Below are positions 686 to 55,562 of a DNA stretch of 64,000 bases, piece by piece; position 1 is the first letter of the stretch, and the number at the start of each line of letters is the position of its first letter. Origin of the DNA: Stegostoma tigrinum. Its lineage: Eukaryota. A program made the translations under genes and the position numbers. Location: contig NC_081394.1 of NCBI RefSeq assembly GCF_030684315.1, forward strand, positions 5,612,163 through 5,676,162, read 5' to 3'. The notes under the pieces were generated by a model that had not been told where the DNA came from, did not search any database, and worked only from the letters and a program-made list of their open reading frames with translations.

Positions 686-844
686 GTAACAATATTGACA
701 AAAGATGGATCATATTGAAAAATCAAATGGTGATCCTTGACAGTGGTGACCTCTTCAGCTAAAGCACGGAGCCTTGTGCCAACAACACCTGAGCATCAGG
801 ATGGAGAACAAACCCTTCTGGGGAACAGGGCTGTCCAGTACTAA
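686..844 (+). pseudogene. Last (cytoplasmic) exon of another paralog whose 5' part lies left of the window; frameshifted relative to the family tail
   Basis: tttctctctcatag| acceptor; ends PEHQDGEQTLLGNRAVQY TAA; two 1-bp deletions relative to the 26747/43642 copies; 3' UTR homology. Confidence 0.65.
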
Positions 845-3675: not shown

Positions 3676-5097
3676 GATCTCCTGCTTTAATACATGAACC
3701 AGACTCTGGGTTTATCTGTCTGAACCCTGTTTAATACATGAACCACTGGTTTATATGTCTGATGGGAACTGGGACAGCAGAGGAGGTGGAAGGTGAGTCT
3801 TTATATTGTAATGAGTTGGAGGGGGCATTTGGGCGGTGGGGAATGGGAGGATGTTAATTAAGGAGCAAATTACTGCAGGTGCTGGAATCTGTACTGAAAA
3901 CAACAAATACTGGAGATCTCAGCGGGTCAGGCAGTTTCGTAGGAGAGTAAACAAGCTAGTGTTTAAAACCAAAATGATTCTTCATTAGAGCTGAAGTGAA
4001 CTGTGGAGGGGGGTAGCATTTATGCCATAGTACGGCGAGGGGTGTTAGGTGTATGGAGCGCTGGAGGAGAAAGGATGATAGTTCAGACTGAGTGATCAGA
4101 ATGTGAGAATGGTGGAACAATTCTGGATCTACCAGCCAAGCAGGTAAGGACAGCCCCAGAGATAATGGGAACTGCAGATGCTGGAAGGCAGTTGTAACAG
4201 GTTCCCCGCATGTGACAGCAGGCAGGCTGAACTAGGTCATTTGGGAAACTTGGTCGGCATTGAAGGGTTGGGCCAAAGGGACTGTTTCCTTGCTGTAGGA
4301 GTATGGCTACTCAACTACAAGAGGCATCACATCTATACCCAGCCCTGTCCTCAGCATTTAAACATTCCACCAGGGGCTTCACTGGGCAGCAATGGTGAGC
4401 TAGAATAGGAAACTGGTGGTTTCATCCTTACATTGTGGCAACAACACAGAAACAGGCTATTCAGTCCATCTGCCTCACATAGGCCTCCTCCAGGGTCACT
4501 GAGCAATGAAGTGGGCACTCACCAAGAATTCCAAAAGTAGGAAGTGTCACCAATCTCCCTGTCAAACAAAAACCTCTCACGTGTCACAGAGAGAGATGAA
4601 CATTTTGATTAATGTGCACACAATCCCACTCAAAGTCAGACACACTGGTTCTGTTCTTGCTGCCTGATTCGATTGATTTTTGAACAGGTTTATTCTGTGG
4701 ATCCTTGCTTCCCTCCTTCTCCCAGTACTGTCACCTTCTGCCAGGATCCACACCCTAATCTCCATTCACTCTCCGCTAGTCCCCGTTCTATTTGATCCCA
4801 GGGCTGTCGCTAAAGCTTACTCTTTCTGCTCAGGGGTCCAGCCCAGTTCCACGGGACCAGGCTCTGCCATCCCAGTGTCACCGACTGTTGCTCATCGCCC
4901 AGGTACCAATTTTCACATCCCAGGTATTAATCTAATTCTGCGCCTCCGTTTCAGCTCTCTTTCATGATCACAGTCTGTGGTGTGCCCACTCCCTCAATTT
5001 GCAGTTCACACAGCACCCTAAAGCACGGGGAATTCCTGATGCCCCCACCCCCAGCCTTGGATTACTTGTGAAAAGTTCTAGTAGTCACAGCACTAAC

Positions 5098-5143
5098 CTG
5101 TAACAGCATTCACCAACGGGAGTAGTTTCTGGGAGCCGTGCCC
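5098..5143 (-). pseudogene. Inverted-duplicate copy of the gene B leader exon
   Basis: Reverse complement of 16893-16938. Confidence 0.65.
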
Positions 5144-5490
5144 CTACAGCAAGAACAAAAATACAGTGAGCTCCTTTTCAACAGATTCCCTTCCTGATCG
5201 AGTAGATCATCCGGTCCAACCCCCTGGCGGTGACTGACAGATACAGCCCATGAGAAGGGCTGGGACATGGAGACACGGAAGTCACGCAGTGACTAAAATG
5301 ACTGTTTTCTTGCCGTTCGCCAAATACATCTTGAGGGACCATTATTTATCCCCCTTTTTAGATCCGCCCCGCAGTCTCGGTCGAACCCCCTTTTCAATGT
5401 TTCATCTGACCCTCCCCCCACCACCGCGCCCTCCCTCAGTTGATCCACAGATCACTTGGATAGCGAGGGGGGAGAATGTAAACAGAACGG

Positions 5491-5621
5491 AATCGGTTCC
5501 ATTGACAAACTCGTGGACAACTTCACTCTTGGGCATTCCTCAGTGCCAGTAAATTAGAGACAGGGGCATTCCCTTCGTAGGTACAGGGCAGCACAACCCG
5601 TCCGCCAAGGACCCCAAAACT
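5491..5621 (-). pseudogene. Inverted-duplicate copy of the truncated IgV 5' fragment
   Basis: Reverse complement of 16415-16545 (ORF 5523..5840 is identical to 16196..16513). Confidence 0.8.
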
Positions 5622-6488
5622 TCTGTGATTGATGGGAAGATGCCGCATAGTGTGAGGAGGAGACGTGAGTGGAGGAGGAGCGGACCAGCATGTCCCGCAA
5701 GGTTCCTGCAGAATTTTGACAAGGGACGGGAGGGAAATATATGACGAGTGGTGGCATTTTGCTGTACCGTCCACAAGACGTGGGCCCAAACATTGTGCCA
5801 ATGGCCATTTCAACATTCCACTATGTTCCCTGGCCAGCATCTTTGTCTCAGGCTTGTTGTCACAAGGTTCTGTGCTTTACTTGAACAGGCCCGTGAAAGC
5901 AACACCAATCGACCATTCAATGTTCAGAGACTATCTCGGGCCTCAGAGAAATACATTCGAGGCAGGACTGAGCTCCGGGTCAAACTGATCACGAGGGGGA
6001 TCACGAAAAGGGTAGGATGGAAGTTTTCCGTGCTTTCCTTGAGTAGGATCATTCTCAGCTGCTTACACCCACCTGTGGGAACAATCCTCACAGGATCCTC
6101 GGCCGATTGGCACACACTTTCAAGCTCAGTGCACTGGGCTTTGCAAAGGCTGATTGGGGCATGCTGTGATTCCTGCCTTCTGCACACCATGCTCTGGAGA
6201 CAGAAGAACCATGTTCCTGGGGAGGGAGTGCAGTTTCTCACACTGTTAACCCCTTCCATCACCCAGTTTGGTAGCTCTGTCCTCAGGGCTCAGCTCGCAC
6301 AGTCGGGTTTATTACTGAGTTATGCTTTTATTCAATACACTGAACTTAAATTCCCAACATGTCATGTTGGAATTTGAAGTCATTCTCTTGATTATTAGTC
6401 CACACCTTTGGTTTACTCCTCTTATAATGTAAACCCTGCACTACCATCCCAAATAAAAGCAGTGATTAAATACACAATGACCTCTCAC

Positions 6489-6751
6489 CTGTTACAGAAA
6501 GATTAACATGTTGATTCGTTCTCTCAGAAATCTGACATGTTGAACAAGGGTGTTATGCAAAACGTTGACTCTTCGTTGCCTCCAGATCTGCCGCGTTCTT
6601 CAAGCGTCCTGTTTGTCAACTTTGGATTCCAGCATCTGCAGTTTTGTTTGTCTCTAATATATTCCTCATGGTCTGATTTCATGCGGCCCGAGATCACAGC
6701 TGACCAGGTGCCTTGTTACAGTTGATCTTTGAACAGGCTTATTTTATTTCT
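6489..6751 (-). pseudogene. Inverted-duplicate copy of the 3' half of the gene A IgV exon
   Basis: Reverse complement of 15285-15547 (RNKISLFKDQL.QGTWSAVISG..KSDHEEY). Confidence 0.75.
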
Positions 6752-7131
6752 GAGATAACAAAGTGTGGAGCTGGATGAACACAGCAGGCCAAGCAGCATC
6801 TTAGGATCACAAAAGCTGACGTTTCAGGCCCAGACCCTTCATCAGGTGAAGACTTTGTTATCTAAGGACAGTCCCACTCGGGAAGGGAGGGAATGGGTTG
6901 GAGAGGTGGGGAGAACATAGCAGAATGTAACATGTAAAGCAAAAAGAACGGAGGGAATGGGAGTGTATTCACAATCTGAAGCTGTTGAACTCAATATTGA
7001 GCCCAGATGGTCGTAAACAGCTCATTTTGAAGATGAGAGGTTGTTCCTCCAGTTTTCATTGTGATTCACTGCAGCATTGTCGAGGACTGACAGTAGAGTA
7101 TGTGAGTGTAATGCTGTATTATAATCACCGG

Positions 7132-7866: not shown

Positions 7867-9103
7867 ATTATCACCGGGTACAGTTCATTCATTCTGGCTC
7901 GCTGCGGGGAACCGACTCTCCCATTCTCACAGGGAGGGGGGAGGTGAGAAATCTGGGTACAGCCTCTGTCGGGAAAAGCCAGCTCAAAGCTGCTTGGCCC
8001 CTCAAGGAAGTGGATGGACAAATTGTTTCGGGTGGGGTTCTCCCGGAAAACTGTGGGCCCAGGCCAGGGAGGGGGAATAGGGGTTGATTCTCATGGGATG
8101 TTCCTCCCCCATCTGTCAGTACGATGTGGGTCAGTCCGGAACAAGCTCCACCCCCTCGTCCCTGGATGTGGCGGAAGTTTGTCATTCATAGGGATAGAGG
8201 GAGGGAACTCAGCGGGACATTGCAGAAGCGGCTCTAAGTGACTGACAGTCTGCGCTTCCTGCAACATGGAGCTTTCCAAAGTGTTTCTCTCCGTCTCCTG
8301 TCGGTGTCTGGCTCTGATCCTGCTCCCGGTCCCGGGAAAGGAGGTGCAGGTATTTACTGTCAGTGCCTCCCACCCGGGGACACGGTAGGAGGGGGATCTC
8401 TCTCCCTCGTCACCCCCAGCACTCAACCTCTGTATTAAAGGGAAATGCTGACCATCTCAGATACAAACAGAAAGTGCCGGAACTTGTCAGGAGCGTGTAA
8501 AGTGATCTCTTGAAACATTGAAAAGGGGGTTAGACCGAGACTGCGGGGGCGGATCTAGAAAGGGGGATAAATAATGGTCCCTGAAGATTTATTTGGCAAA
8601 CGGCAAGAAAACAGTCATTTTAGTCACTGCGTGACTTGTCCCCAACCCCCTCACTCCGTGTCTCCATGTCCCAGCCCTTCTCATGGGCTGTATCTGTCAG
8701 TCATCGCCGGGGGGTTGGACCGGATCATCTACTCGATCAGGAAGGGAATCTGTTGGAAAGTGACTCACTGTGTTTTCTTGTTGCAGAAGCTCACGGAAAC
8801 TACTCCTCCAGCTGCTGCGGAATGTTGCTGCTGTTCCAGGTCAGTGCTGTGACTGCTAGAACACTTCAGCAATGATCAAAGGCTGGCGGATGGTGTGGAA
8901 TCAGGAATTCATCTTGCTCTCAGGTGCTGTGTGGACTCCCAAGTGGAACCATTGAGACAGTGGGCACCGTAGGTTCAGATCTGAACACTGAGAAACAATC
9001 GGTGAGACTGGGAAATATCTCTGACCATGGGATGAGAGTTCGGGCAGTGCTGGGATCAAATCACAATCGGACCTGTCTAGGAGTGTGCAGTTGCTGGGGA
9101 TTG

Positions 9104-14695: not shown

Positions 14696-15019
14696 GACCT
14701 GAAACATCAGCTTTCCTACTCCTCCGACGCTGCCTGGCCTGCTGTGTTCCTCCAGCTCCACCTTTTGACCAGTATCTCGCTGTGTTCTCCCAGCATGTGT
14801 CCAAATGAGAAAGTGATTCAAAATGCTGACCCCCTACTCAGTCCTGACAAATACCCAGAGCAAGCTGCTTTTAGTTGAGGTTCTTGCATGTCTCAGCTTT
14901 AACCTTCCCACAGAAATGAAAGCAGTGAGTTACTGATCAGGGTATCCATGTGAAACTTAGGATGTAGTGTATCAGCAGGGAGATTATATCTGTGGATAAA
15001 TACATTCACTCTTTTCCAG

Positions 15020-15547
15020 GTGACTCGCCTGTCCTAGTTTCTGGGTTCACTGGGGAGTAGCTTGTGCTGCCCTGTACCTGGAAACGGAATTTACAGGTAA
15101 TCTGGAGGGCACCTAAGAAGAAAATTGTCCAAAAATTTCTCAATGGGAAAGATGAGTTGAGAGAACAAGACCCACAGTTCAGAAACCAAATGGATGAAGG
15201 GTCTGGGCCTGAAACATCAGCTTTTGTGCTCCTGAGATGCTGCTTGGCCTGCTGTGTTCATCCAGCTCCACACTTTGTTATCTCAGAAATAAAATAAGCC
15301 TGTTCAAAGATCAACTGTTACAAGGCACCTGGTCAGCTGTGATCTCTGGCCGCATGAAATCAGACCATGAGGAATATATTAGAGACAAACAAAACTGCAG
15401 ATGCTGGAATCCAAAGTTGACAAACAAGACGCTTGAAGAACACGGCAGATCTGGAGGCAACGAAGAGTCAACGTTTTGCATAATACCCTTGTTCAACATG
15501 TCAGATTTCTGAGAGAACGAATCAACATGTTAATCTTTCTGTAACAG
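15020..15547 (+). pseudogene. Disrupted B7-like IgV exon of gene A
   Basis: Acceptor cttttccag; upstream intron homologous to 47410-47490 and 50880-50900; in-frame stop and two insertions. Confidence 0.85.
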
Positions 15548-16414
15548 GTGAGAGGTTATTGTGTATTTAATCACTGCTTTTATTTGGGATGGTAGTGCAG
15601 GGTTTACATTATAAGAGGAGTAAACCAAAGGTGTGGACTAATAATCAAGAGAATGACTTCAAATTCCAACATGACATGTTGGGAATTTAAGTTCAGTGTA
15701 TTGATTAAAAGCATAACTCAGTAATAAACCCGACTGTGCGAGCTGAGCCCTGAGGACAGAGCTACCAAACTGGGTGATGGAAGGGGTTAACAGTGTGAGA
15801 AACTGCACTCCCTCCCCAGGAACATGGTTCTTCTGTCTCCAGAGCATGGTGTGCAGAAGGCAGGAATCACAGCATGCCCCAATCAGCCTTTGCAAAGCCC
15901 AGTGCACTGAGCTTGAAAGTGTGTGCCAATCGGCCGAGGATCCTGTGAGGATTGTTCCCACAGGTGGGTGTAAGCAGCTGAGAATGATCCTACTCAAGGA
16001 AAGCACGGAAAACTTCCATCCTACCCTTTTCGTGATCCCCCTCGTGATCAGTTTGACCCGGAGCTCAGTCCTGCCTCGAATGTATTTCTCTGAGGCCCGA
16101 GATAGTCTCTGAACATTGAATGGTCGATTGGTGTTGCTTTCACAGGCCTGTTCAAGTAAAGCACAGAACCTTGTGACAACAAGCCTGAGACAAAGATGCT
16201 GGCCAGGGAACATAGTGGAATGTTGAAATGGCCATTGGCACAATGTTTGGGCCCACGTCTTGTGGACGGTACAGCAAAATGCCACCACTCGTCATATATT
16301 TCCCTCCCGTCCCTTGTCAAAATTCTGCAGGAACCTTGCGGGACATGCTGGTCCGCTCCTCCTCCACTCACGTCTCCTCCTCACACTATGCGGCATCTTC
16401 CCATCAATCACAGA

Positions 16415-16545
16415 AGTTTTGGGGTCCTTGGCGGACGGGTTGTGCTGCCCTGTACCTACGAAGGGAATGCCCCTGTCTCTAATTTACTGGCACTGAGGAA
16501 TGCCCAAGAGTGAAGTTGTCCACGAGTTTGTCAATGGAACCGATT
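16415..16545 (+). pseudogene. Truncated 5' half of a third IgV exon
   Basis: SFGVLGGRVVLPCTYEGNAPVSNLL, then a frameshift and W->TGA, then GMPKSEVVHEFVNGTD; no acceptor and no 3' half. Confidence 0.8.
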
Positions 16546-16892
16546 CCGCTCTGTTTACATTCTCCCCCCTCGCTATCCAAGTGATCTGTGGATCAACTGA
16601 GGGAGGGCGCGGTGGTGGGGGGAGGGTCAGATGAAACATTGAAAAGGGGGTTCGACCGAGACTGCGGGGCGGATCTAAAAAGGGGGATAAATAATGGTCC
16701 CTCAAGATGTATTTGGCGAACGGCAAGAAAACAGTCATTTTAGTCACTGCGTGACTTCCGTGTCTCCATGTCCCAGCCCTTCTCATGGGCTGTATCTGTC
16801 AGTCACCGCCAGGGGGTTGGACCGGATGATCTACTCGATCAGGAAGGGAATCTGTTGAAAAGGAGCTCACTGTATTTTTGTTCTTGCTGTAG

Positions 16893-16938
16893 GGGCACGC
16901 CTCCCAGAAACTACTCCCGTTGGTGAATGCTGTTACAG
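16893..16938 (+). CDS. Gene B leader-type exon (GHASQKLLPLVNAVT), shortened
   Basis: ttcttgctgtag| 46 bp |gttagtgctgtgact, phase 0-1; homologous to 53303-53360. Confidence 0.55.
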
Positions 16939-22900: not shown

Positions 22901-25900
22901 TGCTGAACCAAGACTGAAATGAGGCCTGGTGCTGAGTGGTCCTGGTAGAACCAAACCCGGACATCAGTGAACATGTTATTGCTGAGTGTGTGCTGTTTGA
23001 CCTGACTGCTGATGACACCTTCCATCACTTTACTGATGATAGAGAGCAGACTGACGGAGTGGTCATTGGCTGGGTTGGATTTGCTATACTTTTGTGTGTA
23101 CAGGTCAGAACTAGGGGCCATTTTCCAAATTCTCAAGCAGATGCCAGTGTTGTAGCTGAATTGGAACACCTTGGCTCGGGGAACAGGAAGCTCTGGAGCA
23201 CAGGCCTTCAGTATTATTACCAGAATGATGTCAAAGATAGCCATCTGTTAATGTCATGTAAAGTGAATTGAAGTCACTGAAGACTGGCATCGGTGGTGGT
23301 GGGCACCACTACAGGAGGTGATGTTGGATCATCCACTCAGTACTCCTGGCCGGAGATTTGTTGCTAATGCTGCAGCCTTGTTTTTGCTCTGATGTGCTCC
23401 CCCATCATTGAGGATGGGGATATTGCTGTGGTCAGCGTTTCCTGCAAGCCTTTTAAATGTCTGCCACCATTCACAACTGAATGAGACAAAGCCTGGAGGA
23501 AATTAGAGATAGCTAGGGGTGTGTGGGGGCTGGAGGAGCTTGCAGAGATGGGGAGGGGTAGAGGAGCTGACTTCGGATTTTATTGTCATGTATATTTCAC
23601 AGTGAGAATACAAACAAAAGCTTTCACTTCTTGCTACGAAACGAGACGGTTTTGAATATTTGGAGAGTAAGGGTGGTGTTGGGTGTTGGATGGGGGTGCA
23701 AGAAAGATATCGCTGAAGAGAGTCCATCAGTGAGAGACACTTGTACCGCCACCTACACTGGACCCAAACAACATCGAAGTCGGTGATCCTCAGGCATAAT
23801 CTTTTGCTGCTGGGCTTATCCCTCCGACCTTACCTCTGCTTATGTCGGAGCCACCGATTCTAGGCCCTATCCTTGCTCAGGGAAAACTAAGTCAGACCTC
23901 AGCCTGCTGCAGGCTGGACCTCTTGCCGTCCAAACTTGTGGTGAGGTTAGTAAATAAAAGTAAAGGAAAAAGAGGTTGGAGCAGATGAGCTCTGGCATCT
24001 TGAAGGAGGCTCTAGAGACGGGGAGCGGCGCAGGTGCTGGAGGGGTTGTGAGTGATGTGAAAGGGACTCATTGCAGTCGGTTAATGTTACAAGGACAGCA
24101 GAGTTTGGGATGTACTGGAGGTAACGGAGGGTTTGTCACACAGTGACCAGGGGAATATTGCAACGGCTGAATCATGAGGACACAGATGAGGGTTTCAGCA
24201 GTAGTTCTTCTGGGGGCAGAGAAGGGGAAGCTAAACATTTGATCTGTTTCTCATTTCACTGTGTTTTGCTTTCCGGCTTGTCCGTCTCAAGGCCCAAGTG
24301 CAACTCCTGAAGCAGATCATGGTAAGTGATTCAATACAACCCAAGGTACTTCCTTGTGAAGGTGCATTGTGCTGGTGAAGGCACAAGGGTTCTTCAGTGG
24401 CTTCAGTTGACTTTTAACCTCTGAGGTTGAAGGTCATAGGTTCAAATCTCTCTGTATGGGACACCAGAATAAAACAGGAGCCCACACTCCCAGCTGCTGA
24501 GGGCCTTCCCCATAGGGGAAGGAGCAGTATGGTGTGGGAGGACTGTATTGTAGTAGAGGGTATAGTACATGGGCCTTTGTCAGAGAGGGTGGGGTACCTC
24601 CCTGTCAAGCAAAGGGTTAGAATTGGTCAGGGAGTACACTCGGAGGGTGGTACTGGGGTGATGCTGAACAGACTCTGAGCCAGAGACTGGATCAGGGAAA
24701 CAGACACACCCAGTGATAATGGGAACTGCCGATGCTGCAGAATCCGAGATAGCAAAGTGTGGAGCTGGATGAACACAGCAGGCCAAGCAGCATGTTGGAG
24801 CACAAAAGCTGATGTTTCGGGAAGGGTCCAGGCCTGAAACGTCAACTTTTGTGCTCCTAAGATGCTGCTTGGTCTGCTGTGTTCATCCAGCTCCACACTT
24901 TGTTGAAACAGGCACACTCAGCCCAGTTGTAGCTCCAGAGCCACCTCAGGAACATCAGGAGACTGGTGCCCAAGTTGGGTGAAGCCACGACAAGGTCATA
25001 CACTAGCCCAAACCCTTCATTTCTGCCAGATTGCCCGGTCACTGGCCTTGGGTGTGTCCTGACCTCAAGGGCTGGGGGCCACTCACATGAGGTTTGGGGC
25101 CAGTGGTATCCAGGCAGGAGGGAGTGATCCCAAGGTGTCTGCGTTGAAGACAATGGAGAGGAATAGTGACCTGGATATTAATCAGGATTCCATTCAATCC
25201 TGTGACTTTCCCATCCAGGAAATAGTTTCCAATTCTTCCTTTGGGTTTACTTGAAGGGAAATTGTTGGTCAGTGTCCAGTTCCCTTCATTGGAAAGCATG
25301 TATCGAACCCATTGTGGGGCTGTATGTGTGTGCAGAGAACTGCGGGACTGTCCTGTGCTAGTGTTTATTGGTATCTCACTCCCACCTCTCTCCAGGACGA
25401 GACTTACCCAAGGATCTGTTTGTACTAGAGCTGGTTCTGAAACACCAGGTGCTACAGGCCTCTGCAGTTGATTTTGTTCATGTGTCCCAGTCTGTTCATG
25501 GCTTCATTCTGTCTCTAGGTCCAACAAGAGGAGGAGTTGAATTGAGAATTGGAATTGGTGTTTTTGTTCTCATTGTTGCAATTGGGGTTTACTTTGTCCA
25601 AAAACACGCAGGACAGTAAGTTCTAGATTATTCTACTAGTCTCACTTTGACCAGATTTTCATTGCTAATGTTGTGTGAAGTGTTGCTGACCTCTGTCCCT
25701 GTCCATTCCCTGAGCTGTGAGGATGCTTCAATCCAGCCTGTCATTGAGCAACAGCATCCAGTTATTTCCAGCTTGTCATCCTCTCGCTTCTGAACAGTCC
25801 CCATGGATTGGAAAGGAGCAAATTTTCTCCCGAAGGAGAACCAGAGGCTGGGGTATATGTTGGGAATTTCAGGAGGTACTTAAGGTGCCACACAATACAT

Positions 25901-43467: not shown

Positions 43468-43642
43468 TTAGAGCTGGACAGCCCCATTCCCCAGAAGGTT
43501 TTGTTCTCCAGCCATTCCATCCTGATGCTCAGGTGCTGTTGTCACAATGCTTTGTACTTCACATGCAGTGATCACCTCTCTCAAAGGGTGAGCATTCGAT
43601 GCTTCATTTTGAGTCCTGCAACACTGGTTTTCAATACAGTTA
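43468..43642 (-). CDS. Gene C cytoplasmic-tail (last) exon
   Basis: tctctctcctag| phase 2, 58 codons ending GEQNLLGNGAVQL TAA; homologous to 686-844 and 26747-26898. Confidence 0.8.
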
Positions 43643-46600
43643 CTAGGAGAGAGAAATCAGCAGATTGCAAATTATATTAGAATTAAATTATACTAAAATA
43701 TTATGTTAACTATTTAATCCATTCAGCCTTCAATCTTGCACGACTATATTTAGATATTAAGTGGCATCATGATCATCATAAAAATACGTACTGAAGATAT
43801 AAGCAGGTTATAATTCTATATATAGAGATAATAAAATGGGAGGCTGGATGAACACAGCAGGCCAAGCAGCATCTCAGGAGCACAAAAGCTGACGTTTCGG
43901 GCCTAGACCCTTCATCAGAGAGGGGGATGGGGAGAGGGAAATGGAATAAATAGGGAGAGAGGGGGAGGCGGACCGAAGATGGAGAGTAAAGAAGATAGGT
44001 GGAGAGAGTATAGGTGGGGAGGTAGGGAGGGGATAGGTCAGACCAGGGAAGACGGACAGGTCAAGGAGGTGGGATGAGGTTAGTAGGTAGCTGGGGGTGC
44101 GGCTTGGGGTGGGAGTAAGGGATGGGTGAGAGGAAGAACCGGTTAGGGAGGCAGAGACCGGTTGGACTGGTTTTGGGATGCAGTGGGTGGGGGGGAAGAG
44201 CTGGGCTGGTTGTGTGGTGCAGTGGGGGGAGGGGACGAACTGGGCTGGTTTAGGGATGCAGTGGGGGAAGGGGAGATTTTGAAACTGGTGAAGTCCACAT
44301 TGATACCATATGGCTGCAGGGTTCCCAGGCGGAATATGAGTTGCTGTTCCTGCAACCTTCGGGTGGCATCATTGTGGCAGTGCAGGAGGCCCATGATGGG
44401 TTGTCATCTACAGAATGGGAGGGGGAGTGGAAATGGTTTGCGACTGGGAGGTGCAGTTGTTTGTTGCGAACTGAGCGGAGGTGTTCTGCAAAGCGGTCCC
44501 CTATAATTCTATATAGATGGGTTAAGCGAGTGGGCAAAAATCTGGCAGATGGAATGTAACTGGGGAAAATGGTAAGTTATTCATTTTGGCAGAAAGAATG
44601 AAAAATATGGAGTAATACTTAGACAATTTGGAGGGATGTAGGCATTCTAGTGTAAGTGAGAAAACGATTGGTATAGAGACACAGCAAGTAAATAAAACTA
44701 ATGGGATGCTATCCCATATCACAGGATGAATTGAACATATGCATGATATTTTCTTAGAGCATCTCCAAGATTGAAGTGAGTTCTTACTTTTCTATTTGTC
44801 CGATGCCTCAGTCAGCACAGCTCCTGTGAAGGTCTAACTCTTGCCCATTTCCTCCCCATAAGCCTCCTCCCCTTTACACTGTTCTCCAAAACAATGCAGC
44901 TCCTGGCACTTATTTTCCAGCTGCCATTGGTGGCCTGGACAATAAATGTAATTTCAGGGGGTTGGATAACATGGCCTTTCAGGCTGGTAGGAGGACGCAG
45001 AGGCTCCAGACCATTAAACAAACAACAGAAATGCTCAGAGACTCTATCAGGCTTCATAGAACCACGTCCAGGGAGGGCTTGAGTCAGATGGATCAGCAAC
45101 AGGATCGGGAAGGAAGATTCCAAAGGGATGGCATTGTCTTTCAAGGCAAAATAGCACTTTGCAACGTTATCCATAAAGTTCAAAATGTACTACTGCACAC
45201 ATCATCTTCACGATATAAAATGTAATGACACAAAACTAGAATTAACGATAGGAAATGCAGAACATTCTATAACTCACCGTTTTATTAAGCTTTGGGCTAT
45301 GACAGCAACATAAATACCGACAAAAAAGACAGCATAAATAATTGCTGTTAGTTCACCATGAGACAGTCCAGTATCTAGAGACAGAATGGAGCCATTAACA
45401 GACTGGTTCACACAAACAAAACTAACAGCAGAGACCTTCAGAACCAGGCCCAGTACAAACAGATCCCTGAGTAGTTCCTGGAGGCATATGCACACTGCTC
45501 CACAGTAAGATTGATACATACTTTCCAATAGGAAGAACTGGACACTGACTAGCACCAGCCTCCATTCATTTAAATTGAACAGCACCTGGAATCGAGCAGG
45601 TTAACAGTGCCCCATACCACTCACTCTCCCTATCATTCTTTGGTAAAATATCACACAGCATTTCAAACATTCCAATGTTCCTTCCTGTCTGTCCAGCAAG
45701 ATCAAATGTAAGAGCTGAAAACACATGCAGTAGATTTACCTGGTACAGGTGTGTTCGGTACAGGTGTAGGAGCTCGCTCTAAAGAAAACATCATGTGTTT
45801 AGCACGGTGTGTGAAACAAACTACAGAAAATTTCAGAGACTCTATCGCGCTTTACAGAAACACATCTAGGGAGGAAACAGGTTCAGGTCAAACTGATCTG
45901 GAGGGATCAGGAACAGGATTGGGAGGAGTGAAAATTCCAACAGGATTCCATTAACTGTGAAGGGAAGAATGGAAGTTTTCCAGAGATTCCTGAGCAGGAT
46001 CCTTCCCAGCAGCTCACATCCCCCTGCGGGGGACAATCCTCACAGGATCCTGGGCCGACTGGGAGACACTTTCAAGCTCAGTGCACTGGGTCTTGTAAAG
46101 GCTGTTTGGGGCGTGCTGTGGGTCCCACCTCCTATACCGCAACCTCAGAGACAGAAGAACCATGCTTCTGGGGACAAAGTGCAGGTTCTCACACCATCAA
46201 TCCCTTCCATCACCCAGTTTGGTAGCTCCATCCGTCAGGGCTCAGCCAACTCACTCGGTGGGATTTATTTCTGAGTGACCGTCGGATGGACAGAGAAGAC
46301 CCACTCAGTAGATTTTCTATCTGTGTGACCCTCAGTGCTTCCTCCAAGAGATGGTGAATATTGTAGGGTACCTATTGATCAGCTCAGGGAGGGCAGGAGG
46401 TTTCCAGGCCCATGTTCGACTGGATGTTGGGAGACTTCATGGGGCTCACAGTCAATGTTGAGGAATCCCAAGGTCAATCCCAATTGATTGCATATATTTG
46501 TACTGCTATTTCTAGCAGGTCTACTTTCCCTGTAAGACTAGGCATATCCAAGGATGGTGACAGCAGAATCTGGGACACAAGGTTGATACAACCACAGTTG

Positions 46601-49600
46601 TATCAGTCACACAGTTCTCCTACCTCGGACACTGGTACTCAAGTGGGCTGGATTTAAACCGAGTATCCTGATTTCTTGCCTAGGTCACAGTCTAGTGATT
46701 TGACACAAACTGATTCAAGTAGCCAAGTAGGTCAGAGGGCAGTTAAGTATCAATCTGGTAAATGTGGGACTGGAGTCACATATGGAGCAAACCAGGCAAG
46801 GATAGCAGGTTTCTTTCCTTCAAGGGACCTGAGTCAACCACTTGGGGTTTTACAATAACCCAAAAGTTTCATGGTTACTTTTGTTGGAGCCAACTCTCTA
46901 TTTCCAATTTTTATTAATTAAGCCAATTTTAAATTCTGGAAGTGCCATGGTGAAATTTGAACTCTCATTCTCTGGATTATTAGTCCAGTAATATAGCCCC
47001 TGCATTAATCTCGCTGTAAAATTCAGTGATTAAATGCAGAATACCCGACTGAGGAACTGCTTACCTGTTACTGAGAGATGGACAAAATCAGTTTGCTCCA
47101 AATTATAGCCCACAGCTGCTCTCTTGTAAATGTAACACTTATACTCATCCTGGTCAGACTCCCTGAGGTCAGAGATCAGAAGTGACCAGTTGCCTTGTTC
47201 CAGTTGATCACTGAACAGATCTGTTCTGTTTCTGAATCTTGGGTGTTGGTCTGTCAAATCATTGTTCCCATCGATGAACTTCCATAAAATTTCATGCTCT
47301 GAAATGCCCCAGATTACCAGTAAATTGGAGACTGGGACAATCCTTTTGTAGGTACAGGGCAGCACAACCTGTTCCCCAAGGAACCCAGAAGCTGGGACAG
47401 GACAGTCACCTGGAAAAAAAGAGTGAAAGTATTTATCCACAGATATAGCCTCCCTGCTGGTACTTTACATCCCAAGCTTCACATGGATACATGGAGATGC
47501 TGGATTTAGAACATAGAACATAGAACATAGAACAGTACAGCACAGAACAGGCCCTTCAGCCCACAATGTTGTGCCGACCATTGATCCTCATGTATGCACC
47601 CTCAAATTTCTGTGACCATATACATGTCCAGCAGTCTCTTAAATGACCCCAACGACCTTGCTTCCACAACTGCTGTTGGCAACGCATTCCATGCTCTCAC
47701 AACTCTCTGCGTAAAGAACCTGCCTCTGACATCCCCTCTATACTTTCCACCAACCAGCTTAAAACTATGACCCCTCGTGCTAGCCATTTCTGCCCTGGGA
47801 AAGTCTCTGGCTATCAACTCTATCTATGCCTCTCATTATCTTGTATACCTCAATTAGGTCCCCTCTCCTCCTCCTTTTCTCCAATGAAAAGAAACCGAGC
47901 TCAGTCAACCTCTCTTTATAAGATAAGCCCTCCAGTCCAGGCAGCATCCTGGTAAACCTCCTCTGAACCCTCTCCAAAGCATCCACATCTTTCCTATAAT
48001 AGGGCGCCCAGAACTGGACGCAGTATTCCAAGTGCGGTCTAACCAAAGTTTTATAGAGCTGCAACAAGATCTCACGACTCTTAAACTCAATCCCCCTGTT
48101 AATGAAAGCCAAAACACCATATGCTTTCTTAACAACCCTGTCCACTTGGGTGGCCATTTTAAGGGATCTATGTATCTGCACACCAAGATCCCTCTGTTCC
48201 TCCACGCTGCCAAGAATCCTATCCTTAATCCTGTACTCAGCTTTCAAATTCGACCTTCCAAAATGCATCACCTCGCATTTATCCAGGTTGAACTCCATCT
48301 GCCACCTCTCAGCCCATCTCTGCATCCTGTCAATGTCCCGCTGCAGCCTACAACAGCCCTCTACACTGTCAACGACACCTCCGACCTTTGTGTCGTCTGC
48401 AAACTTGCTGACCCATCCTTCAATCCCCTCATCCAAGTCATTAATAAAAATTACAAACAGTAGAGGCCCAAGGACAGAGCCCTGTGGAACCCCACTCACC
48501 ACTGACTTCCAGGCAGAATATTTTCCTTCTACTACCACTCGCTGTCTTCTGTTGGCCAGCCAATTCTGTATCCAAGCAGCTAAGTTCCCCTGTATCCAAT
48601 TCCTCCTGACCTTCTGAATGAGCCTACCATGGGGAACCTTATCAAATGCCTTACTGAAGTCCATATACACCACATCCACAGCTCGAACCTCATCAACTTT
48701 TCTAGTCACATCTTCAAAAAACTCTATAAGGTTTGTAAGGCATGACCTACCCCTCACAAAGCCGTGTTGACTGTATTTGATCAAGCCATGCTTTCAGATG
48801 GTCATAAATCTTATCCCTCAGAATCCTTTCTAACACCTTGCAGACGACAGACGTGAGACTTACTGGTCTATAATTGCCGGGGATTTCCCTATTTCCTTTC
48901 TTGAAGGGAGGAATTACATTTGCCTCTCTCCAGTCCTCAGGTACGACTCCAGTGGAGAGCGAGGATGCAAAGATCTTCGCAAGTGGCGAAGCAATTGCAT
49001 TTCTCGCTTCCCAAAGCAGCCGAGGACAAATCTGGTCCGGGCCTGGCGACTTGTCAATCTTAATGTTTGACAAAATTTTCAGCACATCAGCTTCCTCTAT
49101 CTCTATCCATTCCAGCATGCACACCTGCTCTTCAAAGGTTTCATTCACTACAAAGTTCGTTTCTCTCGTAAAGACAGAAGCAAAAAACTCATTTAGGGCT
49201 TCCCCTACCTCCTCAGGCTCCACACACAAGTTCCCTATGCTATCCCTGATCGGCCCTACTCTTTCTTTGATCATTCTCTTATTCCTCACATAAGTGTAAA
49301 ATGCCTTTGTGTTTTCCCGGATTCCTTCTGCCAAGCCTTTCTCGTGCCCCCTCCTAGCTCTCCTCAGACCATTTTTGAGCTCCTTCCTTGCCTGCATGTA
49401 ATCCTCTCTAGCTGAACTTGACCCTAGCTTCCTCCACCTTATGTAAGCTACCTTCTTCCTTTTCACAAGAAGCTCCACCGCTCTCGTCATCCAAGGTTCC
49501 TTTATCTTACCCCTTTTTGCCTGTCTCAGAGGGACATATTTACTCATCACTCCCAACAACTGTTCCTTAAACAGTCTCCACATGTCTATAGTTCCCTTAC

Positions 49601-52600
49601 CATGGAACAACTGCTCCCAGTCCATGCTTCCTAACTCATGTCTAATCGCATCATAGTTTCCTCTTCCCCAATTAAATATCCTCCCATTTTGCCTAAGCCT
49701 CTCCTTCTCCATAGCTATGTAGAATGTGAGGAAGTTATGGTCACTATCACCAAAATGCTCTCCCACCACAAGATCTGATACCTGCCCCGGCTCGTTTCCG
49801 AGCACCAAGTCTAGAATGGCCTCTCCCCTCGTCGGCCTGTCAACGTACTGCGTTAGGAAACCCTCCTGAACACACCTTACAAATACAGCTCCATTCAAAT
49901 CTTCTGCTCGAAGGAGGTTCCAATCAATATTAGGAAAGTTAAAGTCACCCATTACAACAACCCTACTGCGTCCATACTTTTCCAAAATCTGCCGACCTAT
50001 GCTTTCTTCAATCTCCCTGCTGCTATTGGGGGGCCTGTAGTAAACCCCTAACGAGGTGACTACTCCCTTGCTGTTCCTAATTTCCACCCATACTGACTCG
50101 GTAGGCAGATCTTCCTCGACAATGGAAGCTTCTGTCGCTGTGATACCCTCTCTGATTAGTAGTGCTACACCCCCTCCTCTTTTTCCCCCCTCCCTATTCT
50201 TTTTAAATGCTCTAAACCCTGGAAGATCCAGCAACCATTCCTGCCCCTGAGAAACCCATGTCTCTGTTATGGCCACAACATCATAGCACCAGGTACTGAT
50301 CCATGCTCTAAGTTCATCACTTTTATTCCTGATACTCCTTGCATTAAAGCAAACACACTTTAACCGATCCCTTGGTTCCTTCCCAGGAAAATCCTTCCCA
50401 CTAGCTGGTCTACCTCTTGCTACTGCCTCACCTGCATCAACGCTCACCTCTGGTATACAGCTCAGGTTCCCACCCCCCTGCCATACTAGTTTAAACCCTC
50501 TCGAACTACTCGAGCAAACCTTCCACCCAGGACATTGGTCCCCTTCCAGTTCAGATGCAACCCGTCCTTCTTGTACACGTCCCACCTTCCCCAGAAGGCA
50601 TCCCAATTATCTACATATCTGAAGCCCTCCCTCCTACACCAGCTGCGTAGCCACATGTTAAGCTGCGCCCACTCCCTGTTCCTCACCTCGCTACCTCGTG
50701 GCACCGGTAGTAAACCAGAGAACACTACTCTGTTCGTCCTGCTCTGCAGCTTCCATCCTAACTCCCTGAAATCACTTTTTATATCCTCAATCCTATTTCT
50801 GGCTATATCATTTGTGCCAATATGTAACACAATTTCTGGCTGTTCGCCCTCCCCTTTTAGAACCTTATACACCCGAAGCTCTGATCAGTAACTCACTGCT
50901 TCATTTATATGAAAAGATTAACGGTCAGGCATTAAGGGACTTCAACTAACAAGCATTTTGTGCTAGATATCTGTAAACACAGAGCAGCTAGACAGCACTT
51001 TGAATCACATGTTTTCTATTTTACATACGATGGAGAACATCTCAAGACAGCCGTTAGCTCCCATTGATAGAAACTGTACATTTTTCATCCCTGTATTTAA
51101 AGAGAGGGTATACTGGATAGGATAGAGGCTGTTCAAAAGAGATTCACAAAGCTGTTTCCTGGGATGAAGAGGGTGACTTATGAAGGATGGCTAAACAAGT
51201 TAGGCCTTTATCCATCAGATTTTAAAATGAAGCATGATCTTAGTGGAACAAAGAAAATTCTGAGGGGGTTTGAAAGGGTAGATAATGAAGAGATGTTTCC
51301 ACTAGTGGGAGAATAGGGTGCATAGATACATAACAAGGGACATTCATTAAACTGAGAGGGTCATAGAATCATACAGTACAGAAGAGGCCCTTCAGCCTAT
51401 TGAGTCTGCACTGAGTTATCTGCATTAATCTCATTTTCCAGTACTTGGCTCACAGCTTGGAGTATTATGACATTTCAAATGTTCATCAAGTAATGTTTGA
51501 AGGTTGAGAGATTTTCCACCTCAACTACCCTCCTAAACAATGAATTCCAGGATCCCACCATCTTCTGCATGAAAACAAATTCCCTCTAGAACCTCCTGTT
51601 CTTCACCTTAAAATTATACCCCCTTGGTATTGCCCCTAAGGGGAACAGCATCTTCCTCCCCCTTCTGTCCATGTCCCCCAAACTTATACACCTCTGTCAA
51701 GTCTCCTTCAACCCTCTCTGTCTAAAGAAAACAATTCAAGCTTATCCAGCATCGCTTCACAGCTAAACTGCACCATCCCAGGAAATATTCTCATGACTCT
51801 ATATCACGGTGAATCTTCCCTGCACCCAGTCCAGTGCAATCACATCCTTGGAGGTTTTGGAGTACATTTGTAGCTCGGGATGTGGGTGTTGTGATTGGTT
51901 GTCCTGCGGAGCTGGTTTGTTGTTCCACAGACATTACATTACCCTGCTGGGTAACATCCTCAGTGCAGCTTCTGATGAAGCACCAGTGTGTTTTCCCACC
52001 TGGTTTTTAAACTCTGGCATCCGTTGAGCTGGATTGCCTCACTTCCAGGTTTCCTTCATAGTGGAGCGTATATGGGGTCGAGTTCTATGCGTTTACTGAT
52101 GGCTCTCTTTGTCAAGTACCAGGCTTCTAGGAATTCCCATGCCTGTCTCTGCTTTGCTTATCCCAGGATTTTGATGTTGTCCCAGCCGAATTTGAGATTC
52201 TCTTTATCCACGTGGATAGAGATGAGTGAGTATCGGTTGTGCCTTTTTTGTAGCCAGTTGGTGTTCCCTTGTTGTTAGTTTCCTTCCTGCTTGTCCGACG
52301 TACTGTTTCTCACGGTCTCTGCAGGTCATCTTATAGATGACATTGGGTCCTGTCCTTAGTAGGGAGTGGGTCTTTGGTTTGGGTGAGCAGTTGTTGTAAG
52401 GTTGATATAGATTTGTGTGCCATTCTGATGTCCAGTGGTCGTAGAAGTCTTGTGGTTAGTTCCGATGTGTTCCTGATGTAAGGCAGCGTGATAACTGCTT
52501 CTGGGTGTGTAGTATCTTCCTGATGTTGTTCACGTAAGCATCTTCTGACCCAGTTTTTCTGGATATCCATTATCTTTGAAAGCCTGAAAGAGGTATTCTT

Positions 52601-55562
52601 CTTCCTCCTGGCGTTGTCCCGTGTTGCTGCAATGTGTTGTTGCCCTTTTAAATAGCGTTCGCACACAGCTTCGTTTGTGTGTGTTAGGATGGTTACTGTT
52701 GAAGTTCAGTATCTGGTCTGTGTGTGTAGCATTTCTGAGTATTTTGTTTGGAATTCTCTCTTTGCCCTGCGCTGTACCATGACATCCAGGAATGGGAGCT
52801 GTTTGTTCTTCTCCTCCTCTCTGGTGAATTTTATTCCAGTGAGGGTGTTGTTTATGAGTTTGCGTGTCTCCTCTAGTTTGGTCCACTTAATGATGACAAA
52901 GGTGTTGTCCACATAGCGTGTCCATAGTCTTGGTTGGATTAGCGGAAGGGCTGTACTTTCCAGTCTTTGCATCACTGCCTCGGCTATAAGTCTGCAGATA
53001 GGTGATCCCATGAATGTCCTGTTGATTTGTTTATAATGTTTGGCTGTTGAAAGTGAAGTGGGTGGTGAGGCATAGGTCCAGTAGTACTGGATAATACAAA
53101 CTTATAAACAACACCCTCACATTTCAGCTACATTGTTTTGCCAGTTAATCAAGAGCTCCAGTTCACATGATGCCTGTTAAACCAAATTTGCTGTATTTCT
53201 ATAACTGGGATTGTAATAGGACCTTAAAGCAAGATGAATTCCTGATTCCCCACCACCAGCCTTTGATCGCTGCTGAAATATCCCTGCAGTCACAGCACTG
53301 ACCTGAAATAGCAGAAATTACAGTCAGCAGCACGAACAGTACTCTTTGGGAGATGTATCTCTGCAACAAGAAAACATAGTTAAACTCTTTACAACAGATT
53401 TTTGCTGGCACGTTCTTGCTCCACCATCTCCCCCAGCCTATCCCTTTGTAATCAGATCACCGGGGTGAAGGAAGCAGAGCTGAGAGGGGATGGTGACAGG
53501 TCTCATGATCTGTAGGAGCGAGTCCCCGTTTCTGGAAACAGACACTGCAATGGGAAGGAAGGGGCAGGATCACGTTACCACGGTGTTTCTTCACGTGGAA
53601 ACCGGTTATTGATAACGAGCGAAATTGGGGAGAGGATTGGTTGTTAAGGAGACCGGATCTATCAGTGTGGAGGAAGGAATGAAACTACAAGGAAAAACAA
53701 CCGGTCAAATCAGTCAATAAATAGCAGCTAATGATTAGCACTGTCCAAGTTTACACACACACACAGAGTCTCCGGTAGAAATCACTATTTATCGACCCCC
53801 CCCCCCCCGGATCTTATCTGTCTGTCCTTTGCACTCCCCAGTGCCTTCCCTCACCACTCCGCGTCTGTTCTCCAACTCCACCAGACGCTCGGGGTGGTGA
53901 GGAATCAGTAACGGTTCAGACACCCCAGAAGTCCCTTCCCTTCACCACCGATCTCCCACGTCCCGTAATCGGAGAGAAGGTGCTGGGAATGAGTGGTGGT
54001 ATGGGAGACACACACACAATTATTTTTCCACACAAAACTCGAATTGAACACGAAACGTTAACTCTCTCCCTATTCGGCAGCACTTTCTGTTTCACTTTCC
54101 TCGAAGCTTTGTTTCCTATGATAATATCCTTACGGGAACTGCCGTTAGGCAAGTACGTGCAGCTGAGATAACGAGGTGTGGAACCTGGATGAACACAGCA
54201 GGCCAAGCGGCGTCAGAGGAGCAGGAAGGCTGATGTTTCGGGTCTGGAGGAACTGTCTGTATTCTGCAGGAAATGCTACACTTGTCCCCACACCTCCTCC
54301 CTCACCCCCATCCCAGGCCCCAAGATGATTTTCCATATTAAGCAGAGGTTCACCTGCACATCTGCCAATGTGGTATACTGCATCCACTGTACCCGGTGCG
54401 GCTTCCTCTACATTGGGGAAACCAAGCGGAGGCTTGGGGACCGCTTTGCAGAACACCTCCGCTCGGTTCGCAATAAACAACTGCACCTCCCAGCCGCAAA
54501 CCATTTCCACTCCCCCTCCCATTCTCTTGATGACATGTCCATCATGGGCCTCCTGCACTGCCACAATGATGCCACCCGAAGGTTGCAGGAACAGCAACTC
54601 ATATTCCGCCTGGGAACCCTGCAGCCATACGGTATCAATGTGGACTTCACCAGTTTCAAAATCTCCCCTTCCCCCACCGCATCCCAAAACCAGCCCAGCT
54701 CGTCCCCTCCCCCCACTGCACCACACAACCAGCCCAGCTCTCCCCCCCCCCCCCAAAAACCAGTCCAATCTGTCCCTGCCTCCCTAACCTGTTCTTCCTC
54801 TCACCCATCCCTTCCTCCCACCCCAAGCCGCACCCCCAGCTACCTACTAACCTCATCCCACCTCCTTGACCTGTCCGTCTTCCCTGGACTGACCTATCCC
54901 CTCCCTACCTCCCCACCTACACTCTCTCCACCTATCTTCTTTTCTCTCCATCTTCGGTCCGCCTCCCCCTCTCTCCCTATTTATTCCAGTTCCCTCTCCC
55001 CATCCCCCTCTCTGATGAAGGGTCTAGGCCCGAAACGTCAGCTTTTGTGCTGCTGAGATGCTGCTTGGCCTGCTGTGTTCATCCAGCCTCACAGTTTGTT
55101 ATCTTGTCTGTATTCTGTACTCGGGTCTGTGTTCAGAGGAAGGGTCACCGGACCCGAAGCGTTAACTCTGTTTTCTACTTCACAGGTGCTGCCAGACCCA
55201 CTGAGCTTTTCCTGCAACTTTGTTTTTGTTCCTAACTTACAGCATTCACAGTTCTTTCGGTTTTTGTTTTGGGTCTGGACCTTTCATTTCTGAAGAAGGG
55301 TCCAGACCTGAAACCTCAACTTTCCGGCTCTTCTGACGCCGCTTGGCCTGCTGTGTACATCCAGCTCTACACCTTGTTATCCCAGATTCTCCAGCGTCCA
55401 GCGACAGGTTTTCATTTTACAGGAGGTGCTAACTGTAAAGGTTTACAGCTTTTGAGTTTAGTTTCACTTTAATGGTGCGAATAGTAACGTTTATGGAGAC
55501 TGGTGCAGGATCTGCATTCCCACTCTGGCTACTATTCCTACCTCCATCTGATTTCTGTCCAT
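43468..55562 (-). CDS. Gene C: intact six-exon single-IgV type I membrane protein (B7/butyrophilin/MOG-like V domain), 244 aa; join complement(55542-55562,53303-53360,47065-47409,45740-45778,45278-45374,43468-43642)
   Basis: All introns are GT-AG with compatible phases (0,1,1,1,2). Total 735 nt = 244 aa + TAA with no internal stop: MDRNQME/RYISQRVLFVLLTVISAISG/DCPVPASGFLGEQVVLPC...EYKCYIY...VHLSVT/ERAPTPVPNTPVP/DTGLSHGELTAIIYAVFFVGIYVAVIAQSLIK/RNCIENQCC...GEQNLLGNGAVQL*. Confidence 0.82.
43827..44501 (-). mobile_element. Penelope-like 3' fragment in gene C intron 5
   Basis: GIY-YIG C-terminus; intact hammerhead core at 43891-43918; TATAATTCTATATA duplicated on both sides. Confidence 0.9.
45278..45374 (-). 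CDS. Gene C transmembrane exon
   Basis: ctgtctctag| 97 bp |gtgagt, phase 1-2; hydrophobic LTAIIYAVFFVGIYVAVIAQSLI followed by KR. Confidence 0.85.
45740..45778 (-). CDS. Gene C Pro/Thr-rich stalk micro-exon (ERAPTPVPNTPVP)
   Basis: ttttctttag| 39 bp |gtaaat, phase 1-1; internal ACACCTGTACC duplication. Confidence 0.75.
47065..47409 (-). CDS. Gene C IgV (V-set) exon, B7/BTN-like
   Basis: 345 bp phase 1-1 exon (ttttccag|...ACAG|gtaagc). B-strand VVLPC, C-strand W, B7-type 'Q.PRFRNRT.LF..QL..GNWSL.IS.L..SD..EY.C'; sequons NRT and NWS. Confidence 0.93.
47507..50875 (-). mobile_element. Near-full-length CR1 LINE: 3' part of ORF1 (SGNH esterase) plus ORF2 (APE endonuclease and RT)
   Basis: ORF1 'LHIGTND...DGLHL'. 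ORF2 'CFNARSIRNK...ITETW...GDFN...SDH' and '[10 protein letters not shown]...KFADDTK'; frameshifts near 48790 and 47800; (TAGAACA)n tail at 47507-47535. Confidence 0.95.
51090..51848. mobile_element. Two old CR1 3' remnants in opposite orientation
   Basis: Degenerate CR1 C-terminal similarity (+ about 51090-51360; - about 51361-51848). Confidence 0.55.
51848..53085 (-). mobile_element. Penelope-like element (Poseidon type) remnant
   Basis: MGSPI..LIAEAVMQRLE, WTRYVD.TF, LPFLDV. Confidence 0.88.
53303..53360 (-). CDS. Gene C signal-peptide exon (RYISQRVLFVLLTVISAISG)
   Basis: Acceptor ttttcttgttgcag, donor CAG|gtcagt, 58 bp phase 0-1, hydrophobic core. Splice context is homologous to 8787 and 16893. 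Confidence 0.8.
54166..55102 (+). mobile_element. Penelope-like GIY-YIG/3' fragment with inverted 5' terminal segment, in gene C intron 1
   Basis: ORF 54325 carries an intact GIY-YIG; hammerhead core at 55012-55039. Confidence 0.9.
55012..55039 (+). ncRNA. Minimal hammerhead ribozyme motif in the PLE terminus (intact copies also at 3351-3378, 7196-7223, 6818-6845 and 43891-43918, all minus)
   Basis: CUGAUGA-A-GGGU(CUAG)GCCC-GAAA-CGUC: conserved core boxes, 4-bp stem II, palindromic ACGU stem III and GUC cleavage triplet; stem I is short. Confidence 0.7.
55542..55562 (-). CDS. Gene C exon 1 coding part (MDRNQME)
   Basis: gaaATGG Kozak context with an in-frame TGA just upstream. Donor GAG|gtagga is phase 0, matching exon 2. 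Confidence 0.6.

Follow-up and report, generated by a model that had tools for sequence, protein, structure and literature searches.

A probable shark-specific branch of B7-like membrane proteins with exchangeable ectodomains at a zebra shark locus

B7 and butyrophilin molecules set the activation thresholds of lymphocytes, and sharks are the oldest lineage with an immunity built on immunoglobulins (Ig), T-cell receptors and the major histocompatibility complex. What, then, is a cluster of B7-like genes in a shark genome, and would its products act as ligands or as receptors? Here we address this question for 64,000 nucleotides of the zebra shark, Stegostoma tigrinum (RefSeq assembly GCF_030684315.1, contig NC_081394.1, positions 5,612,163 to 5,676,162 of the forward strand), a stretch of repeat-rich vertebrate DNA with a single N run that we refer to as the window. 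An earlier note, made from the letters alone, had read it as a cluster of single-V B7/butyrophilin-like genes in birth-and-death evolution (a last exon at 686, pseudogene A, gene B and an intact gene C), belonging to an uncharacterised, lineage-expanded chondrichthyan immune family. We found that gene C is conserved and spliced and encodes a B7-type, single-V type I membrane protein whose C-terminus is invariant and peculiar to the family, and that the other copies in the window are decaying. We consider it probable that this is a shark-specific B7-like cluster in which gene C specifies a putative ligand or counter-structure with a docking or sorting tail.

Gene C lies on the minus strand from ~56.05 to 43.47 kb and comprises six exons, in the order 7-aa start exon, leader, IgV, 39-bp Pro/Thr stalk, 97-bp transmembrane (TM) exon and tail. 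The exons, with an alternative start, were placed as follows; database homologs are cited here and below by P number.

56045..56053, minus strand: alternative first coding exon (MMT) of RefSeq isoform X2, ATGATGACG followed by a gtaacc donor; matches the N-terminus MMT/RYISQ of P0195
55542..55562, minus strand: first coding exon 1a, MDRNQME, phase 0; ATG at 55562, GAG at its end, gtagga donor; residues 1-7 of P0224
53303..53360, minus strand: leader exon, 58 nt, RYISQRVLFVLLTVISAIS + G, with a hydrophobic signal-peptide core; ttgcag acceptor, gtcagt donor
47065..47409, minus strand: IgV exon, 345 bp, phase 1-1; Pfam V-set 1e-8; V domain of P0195 100% identical
45740..45778, minus strand: Pro/Thr stalk micro-exon, 39 bp, ERAPTPVPNTPVP; ag acceptor, gtaaat donor, spliced contig of run X1
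45278..45374, minus strand: TM exon, 97 bp, phase 1 to 2; hydrophobic, ag acceptor, gtgagt donor
43468..43642, minus strand: tail exon, 57 codons plus stop, ending ...TTAPEHQDGMAGEQNLLGNGAVQL; 100% identical to P0224 residues 188-244

When these exons were joined by script and the frame was checked, the spliced frame proved open. Its product is a protein of 244 aa that begins with a signal peptide and a single B7-type IgV domain, in which two N-glycosylation sequons occur; a Pro/Thr stalk of 13 residues leads to the one TM helix, and the cytoplasmic tail has 57 residues. Letter for letter it equals P0224, which is RefSeq XP_059497313.1, "CD276 antigen homolog isoform X1" of Stegostoma tigrinum; the intact 244-aa gene proposed earlier is therefore real, and since it already exists as a RefSeq model its description is no discovery of an unannotated gene. 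The start at 55562 likewise holds, with the alternative start exon at 56053-56045 lying beyond the end previously assigned to the gene. Our searches were run exon by exon, the identical database protein standing for the joined model, and homologs were gathered by an exhaustive HMMER search with the V exon together with a word-based search with a homolog as query. The 7-aa first exon recurs in gene C homologs as MAGQEQQ or MDGKQMQ. The leader exon corresponds to P0224 residues 8-27 and is homologous to the leader of P0022; it was located via the N-termini of homologs, a scan for a strict ATG followed by a hydrophobic segment having failed because this exon has no ATG of its own. The V exon at 47409-47065 (minus) is the sole long open V-type reading frame in the window, and the stalk peptide ERAPTPVPNTPVP also connects the two V domains in two-V homologs.

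Evidence for splicing came from run X1, which is guessed to be RNA and derives from a different organism ~93% alike; the region is in no run recorded as RNA. One 167-nt contig of this run joins the stalk, TM and tail exons at canonical GT..AG boundaries on the minus strand, with joints at 43642/45278 (tail to TM) and 45372/45739 (TM to stalk), so that the TM exon is covered over 45278-45372 and spliced on both sides. A second contig, over the V exon, ends exactly at the donor, 47065. As the first contig splices the TM exon to 45739/45740, the stalk exon was placed at 45778-45740, and a first placement at ~45470-45430 from gene B homology was ruled out. DNA runs of the zebra shark, which may share the assembly's sample, match the covered exons without differences. 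At 47414, just upstream of the V acceptor, one DNA contig each in runs X2 and X3 lacks 3 nt of a T-run, probably a heterozygous intronic indel.

We then asked which proteins of solved structure in the PDB the V domain resembles, using as queries the gene C V exon alone and a profile of the family.

CD276: V exon alone 1e-14, family profile 7e-18
VTCN1: V exon alone 7e-14, family profile 3e-17
PD-L1: V exon alone 3e-10, family profile 2e-13
MOG: V exon alone 5e-7, family profile 8e-9
SCN4B: V exon alone 7e-7, family profile 9e-10
BTN1A1: V exon alone 5e-5, family profile 3e-7

The top of the ranking, CD276 before VTCN1 before PD-L1, is identical for both queries, and gene C shares with classical B7 proteins an N-terminal B7-type IgV domain, as judged from the Pfam V-set and PDB matches. 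A membrane-proximal IgC domain is absent from gene C: the 39-bp stalk exon alone separates the V and TM exons, and a six-frame hidden Markov model (HMM) scan found no further Ig exon in the gene. Nor does it have the IgV-IgC plus B30.2 (PRY/SPRY) architecture of butyrophilins, the tail exon being without a Pfam match; in P0151, V-set was the only domain above the Pfam cut-off. Lacking both IgC and B30.2, gene C is neither a classical B7 protein nor a butyrophilin. The earlier assignment of the V domain to the B7 type, on a protein without IgC or B30.2, is thus borne out.

Comparison with the known families sharpens this placement. CD276 and VTCN1 resemble the shark proteins in being type I membrane proteins with an N-terminal B7-type IgV domain (the block ...RF.NRT.LF.DQL..GN.S..I..L...D..Y.C) and a short tail without tyrosine motifs, whereas the shark family has a 13-aa Pro/Thr stalk in place of the membrane-proximal IgC, is multi-copy with order-specific expansions, carries a C-terminal peptide seen only in sharks and can bear alternative non-Ig ectodomains. 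MOG too has a single BTN/B7-like IgV domain with the TM segment directly after it. However, the V similarity of the shark proteins to MOG is weaker (5e-7 to 8e-9), they have a hydrophilic tail and no second hydrophobic segment, and they form a multi-copy family, whereas MOG is single-copy with an unrelated tail. Chicken BG is a butyrophilin-related multigene family of single IgV, TM and cytoplasmic tail proteins under birth-and-death evolution, and in these general features it parallels the shark family. In BG, however, the tail is a long coiled coil to which many 21-nt exons contribute, whereas in sharks a single exon, joined directly to the TM exon in gene C (57 codons), encodes a tail of 55-58 aa that ends in a conserved peptide. 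The parallel implies no orthology. Butyrophilins share a V domain of the same superfamily (BTN1A1, 5e-5 to 3e-7), but the shark proteins lack their IgC and B30.2/PRYSPRY domains, and the shark tail falls below every Pfam curated cut-off. The nearest non-shark V relatives, at 30-49% local identity, are teleost multi-V 'SKINT-like / pIgR-like' proteins; these have 2-15 V domains and no tail in common with sharks, and in the V tree they sit apart from every shark sequence on a long branch (1.63). Two further identities were rejected: the CD28 family (PMC11599192), because the V domain matches the B7 side, and UrIg/UrIg2, whose architecture is V-C1-C2-C3 (Flajnik et al. 2025, PMC12227049).

The family is marked by its C-terminus. 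The earlier observation that this tail resembles nothing recognisable is upheld by our Pfam and PDB searches, which returned no match for the gene C tail, and the search with the tail alone, as the note had suggested, gave 23 matches, sharks in every case. The consensus TTAPEHQDGxxGEQNLLGNGxVQ[HYL] is near-invariant and identifies a shark family with the ...EQNLLGNGAVQH tail to which gene C belongs. The gene C segment order and this C-terminus were found in the Orectolobiformes (Stegostoma, Rhincodon, Chiloscyllium and Hemiscyllium), Heterodontiformes (Heterodontus), Lamniformes (Carcharodon and Cetorhinus) and Carcharhiniformes (Scyliorhinus and Mustelus); Pristiophorus has two-V forms from which the tail was not recovered. 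With relatives seen only in sharks, of five orders, the family appears to be a shark-specific (Selachii) branch of the B7 / butyrophilin superfamily, a narrower range than the chondrichthyan one first suggested.

The shared layout consists of a short exon 1, a leader, one or more phase-1 ectodomain exons, a Pro/Thr micro-exon, a 97-bp TM exon and a single tail exon. Gene C has this layout, and its segment order recurs in P0167, P0173, P0178, P0182, P0199 and P0205. What varies is the ectodomain: P0002, P0003 and P0007 have two V domains, P0032 has a Cys-rich domain plus a V domain, P0213, P0227 and P0228 have the Cys-rich domain only, and P0214 has no ectodomain. The family is therefore built of interchangeable phase-1 exons on a common leader/TM/tail chassis; it belongs to a known superfamily, and it is the modular architecture that is unusual.

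In the V tree, gene C groups with Rhincodon (100/87) and then with Chiloscyllium plus Hemiscyllium (100/96), following the species tree; its lineage is thus one of 1:1 orthologs within the Orectolobiformes (zebra, whale, bamboo and epaulette sharks). Since these orthologs occur in whale, bamboo and epaulette shark, gene C itself is conserved and is not turning over. Most other clades are order-specific (horn shark, lamniforms, catsharks, sawshark), a pattern that fits lineage-specific expansion. Birth and death is accordingly an apt description of the window, where decay of the other copies is directly visible, but not of gene C. Between gene C and all other members, the last 24 tail residues are 71-92% identical and the V domains 63-91%; among paralogs the figures are 71-88% and 63-72%, respectively. 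The gene C TM exon is 61-91% identical to those of its orthologs and 18-24% identical to those of paralogs.

Automatic annotation has dispersed these proteins under at least eight RefSeq names (CD276 homolog, BTNL2, BTN1A1-like, MOG-like, SCN4B-like, ICOSL-like, CD86-like, VTCN1-like and 'uncharacterized'), 'MOG-like' having been given to many horn-shark and smooth-hound (Mustelus) members. Because 'CD276 homolog', 'MOG-like' and 'SCN4B-like' in shark genomes all denote one family, such labels are unsafe for orthology-based inference. Full-text literature searches, plus look-ups in some of the papers that they listed, found no description of the family, which by this measure is unstudied; 'uncharacterised' is thus a fair term for the family, gene C being nonetheless an existing gene model. 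A B7-like branch without IgC, with an invariant cytoplasmic peptide and an exchange of V for Cys-rich domains, would add candidate immune ligands or receptors for comparative immunology. One member, P0017 (XP_078389634.1 of Cetorhinus maximus), is a V, stalk and TM protein fused to a PRDM7/9-like protein. The fusion is either real or the product of an annotation pipeline that merged neighbouring genes, and the model may serve as a synteny marker.

What might gene C do? Similarity of the V domain suggests an immune function for the family. The reading that we consider probable has this domain displayed near the membrane, where, like B7-H3, B7-H4 and PD-L1, it would engage a counter-receptor of another cell. 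Tyrosine is absent from the gene C tail, and with it any immunoreceptor tyrosine-based inhibitory, switch or activation motif (ITIM, ITSM or ITAM), for which reason the protein would act as a ligand or counter-structure and not as a tyrosine-signalling receptor. Its invariant C-terminal peptide, with an E-x-x-L-L dileucine, might be a docking or sorting signal for a cytoplasmic sorting or scaffolding partner. Several points weigh against this proposal. The E-x-x-L-L sequence misfits the canonical [DE]xxxL[LI] or DxxLL motifs in most members, and the lack of tyrosine was checked by eye and in gene C only. Zebra-shark expression data were not found, no listed run being on record as RNA, and the splice support is that of run X1, with its guessed RNA status and its other source organism. 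Finally, bona fide shark CD276, VTCN1, HHLA2, BTN and NKp30 are not in the V tree, so that placement inside the B7 superfamily rests on the ranking of E-values.

The main rival is that these proteins are receptors, the C-terminal peptide or the clade-specific TM helix recruiting an adaptor while a ligand, perhaps of pathogen origin, is sensed by the V or Cys-rich domain. Paralogs are indeed most alike in the C-terminal 24 residues, conservation of the TM exon is high within the gene C clade, lineage-specific expansion with pseudogenes is typical of innate receptor families, and the swapping of ectodomains on one chassis resembles receptor diversification. However, gene C has no tyrosine motif in its tail and no charged residue in its TM core, Pfam and PDB searches recognised no known adaptor-binding motif, and in the B7:CD28 system it is the ligands that the V domain resembles. 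We regard a receptor role as unlikely.

It is considerably less probable that gene C is the shark ortholog of CD276 (B7-H3) with IgC secondarily lost, as the RefSeq name 'CD276 antigen homolog' of several members might suggest. CD276 is the best match of solved structure, but the match is just ~27 bits per V domain; VTCN1 scores the same against the gene C V domain, each at ~30% identity. Moreover, the IgC exon is missing, at least six other automatic names are in use among the paralogs, the tail and the exon-1/leader layout are family-specific and confined to sharks, and each species has many paralogs that fall into order-specific clades. Least credible of all is a non-immune role as single-V adhesion proteins or channel-auxiliary subunits (sodium-channel beta-4 or MPZ-type), for while the family profile does match SCN4B over V plus TM (9e-10) and several members are named 'sodium channel subunit beta-4-like' in RefSeq, that score is eight orders of magnitude weaker than those of CD276 or VTCN1, and channel subunits are single-copy and conserved across vertebrates, unlike this multi-copy, shark-restricted and partly decaying family.

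Pseudogene A and gene B lie on the plus strand.

8266..8349, plus strand: exon 1 (MELSKVFLSVSCRCLALILLPVPGKEVQ), likely start of the pseudogene A / gene B unit; gtattt donor; 67-73% identical to residues 1-33 of P0032, P0025 and P0158
8787..8839, plus strand: leader pseudo-exon, 53 nt, out of frame; homologous frame SSRKLLLQLLRNVAAVPG shifted, ending in phase 2 and not phase 1
15004..15380, plus strand: V exon of pseudogene A; tblastn matches 'SGFTGE*LVLPC' and '...DHEEYIRD', HMM match in two pieces
16407..16547, plus strand: frameshifted, truncated 5' part of another V exon; HMM positions 8-31 and 36-50 in different frames
16893..16938, plus strand: gene B leader exon, 46 nt, GHASQKLLPLVNAVT + G; tag acceptor, gttagt donor; shortened as in whale-shark P0032
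18827..19096, plus strand: gene B ectodomain exon, 270 bp, phase 1-1, Cys-rich and non-Ig; 83.5% identical to P0032 residues 48-137
19411-19545, no strand: assembly gap (N run) in a gene B intron; the Cys-rich exon ends 314 nt before it and the next exon follows after 4.7 kb
24292..24321, plus strand: gene B linker micro-exon (G)PSATPEADH; the genomic sequence, read through, matches P0032 residues 138-153 at 100%
25519..25615, plus strand: gene B TM exon, 97 bp; 69% identical to P0032 residues 272-303; upstream intron homologous to that of gene C
26747..26898, plus strand: gene B tail exon; conserved frame (...GGQNLLGNGAVQH and stop) open, with a +1 shift against the TM exon

Pseudogene A and gene B could belong to a single transcription unit with exon 1 at 8266-8349 as its start. 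The V exon of pseudogene A has an in-frame stop and ~87 nt of repeat inserted at 15193-15284, and its second Ig cysteine is gone. Gene B also has lesions (its tail, spliced to the TM exon, reads QKQPRQKMGSY*), and no protein for the zebra-shark copy is in the database. The TM exon of 97 bp that had been noted as a shared feature is exact in both gene B and gene C. A single ectodomain per gene also stands; 'single-V' is false for gene B, whose ectodomain is Cys-rich and not of Ig type. Whale-shark P0032 has the same exon 1, shortened leader, Cys-rich domain (83.5%) and linker (100%), followed by a V domain. For gene B we found no V exon between 17.9 and 47 kb by tblastn and six-frame HMM scan. 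As the annotation of epaulette shark (P0213) and of basking shark (P0227 and P0228) includes V-less proteins with the Cys-rich domain, this layout is a natural variant. The assembly gap touches no family exon, and an ORF (open reading frame) at 19134-19784 (minus) that runs across it is an artefact of translating N. In the exon order of the whale shark a V exon would come after the linker exon and not at the position of the gap. A hidden exon within 19411-19545 is formally possible, since an N run does not give the true size of a gap.

The Cys-rich domain of gene B is the most novel item in the window. In the alignment of homologs it spans ~90 aa with five invariant cysteines and a sixth in the linker, and it has been conserved since the divergence of orectolobiform and lamniform sharks. 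It has no Pfam, PDB (sequence search) or usable Atlas match, hhalign gave a probability of 0.2% against the V profile, and AlphaFold (AF2) models, though mostly beta, had predicted local distance difference test (pLDDT) values of 38 and 44, a confidence too low to use. By these comparisons the domain appears to be unrelated to Ig V and without a recognisable fold. Tentatively, and as a possibility more doubtful than not, we suggest that the leader/TM/tail chassis is a shark-specific module presenting a B7-like V domain and/or an unrelated Cys-rich, beta-rich domain, and that these could be two arms of one recognition system (such as a sensor paired with a ligand or a decoy) sharing a cytoplasmic partner through the C-terminal peptide. 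One more cysteine is present in the zebra-shark domain (K-C-G, where the four homologs have R or S), and the linker exon has GG and not AG as the acceptor of its Cys-bearing part (24270-24321 region), a longer ancestral form of the exon being expected to start at 24277. The two changes may offset one another in cysteine number or coincide by chance in a decaying gene.

The remaining family sequences in the window are partial.

686..844, plus strand: orphan tail exon, fourth copy of the family; frameshift near 737 and stops, upstream exons off the window
4181..6843, minus strand: inverted duplicate of 15193-17855; self-blast over 2663 nt at 99.3% identity

At the orphan exon, tblastn matches P0032 residues 310-320 in one frame and residues 321-358 in another. 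The tail-exon paralogs claimed earlier are genuine: three copies start at 686 (+), 26747 (+) and 43642 (-), with 75% mean column identity, and all three have the conserved C-terminal peptide (...NLLGN(G/R)AVQx and stop). Self-comparison likewise confirmed the homology of introns and 3' flanks, pairing 15634-16113 with 46987-45832, 25268-25518 with 45549-45375, and 299-929 with 26385-26985. A block 300-500 nt downstream of two tail exons, at 1259-1396 (+) and 43164-43033 (-), is 67-68% identical to the C-terminus of P0053, and is probably a shared 3' flank read through by annotation. The inverted duplicate carries copies of the 3' half of the V exon, the V fragment and the leader exon (tblastn matches at 6754-6656, 5615-5486 and 5143-5096). 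Either a palindromic duplication took place very recently or the assembly is at fault here; the inner boundary of the duplicate lies within the repeat inserted in the pseudogene V exon.

Repeats were also located.

47518..50900, minus strand: LINE (long interspersed nuclear element) retrotransposon in the leader-V intron of gene C; Pfam Exo_endo_phos 1e-18, RVT_1 3e-25
7132-7817, 10836-11473, 13954-14658, 34748-35338, 43825-44501 and 54388-55104: copies of a repeat with the ORF motif ...LQEQQLIFRLGTLQPNGINVDFTSFKISP...

The LINE has the same orientation as gene C, with an endonuclease ORF of 619 aa and a reverse-transcriptase ORF of 334 aa, and has relatives in the window at 21572-22812, 28700-29585 and 35422-37346. 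The LQEQQLIFRLGTLQPNGINVDFTSFKISP repeat family has at least six copies, one of them in the TM-tail intron of gene C. From 62884 to 64000 the window is occupied by a G-rich satellite with a period of 21-23 bp, ~50 copies and a GC skew of +0.72, which runs past the window end.

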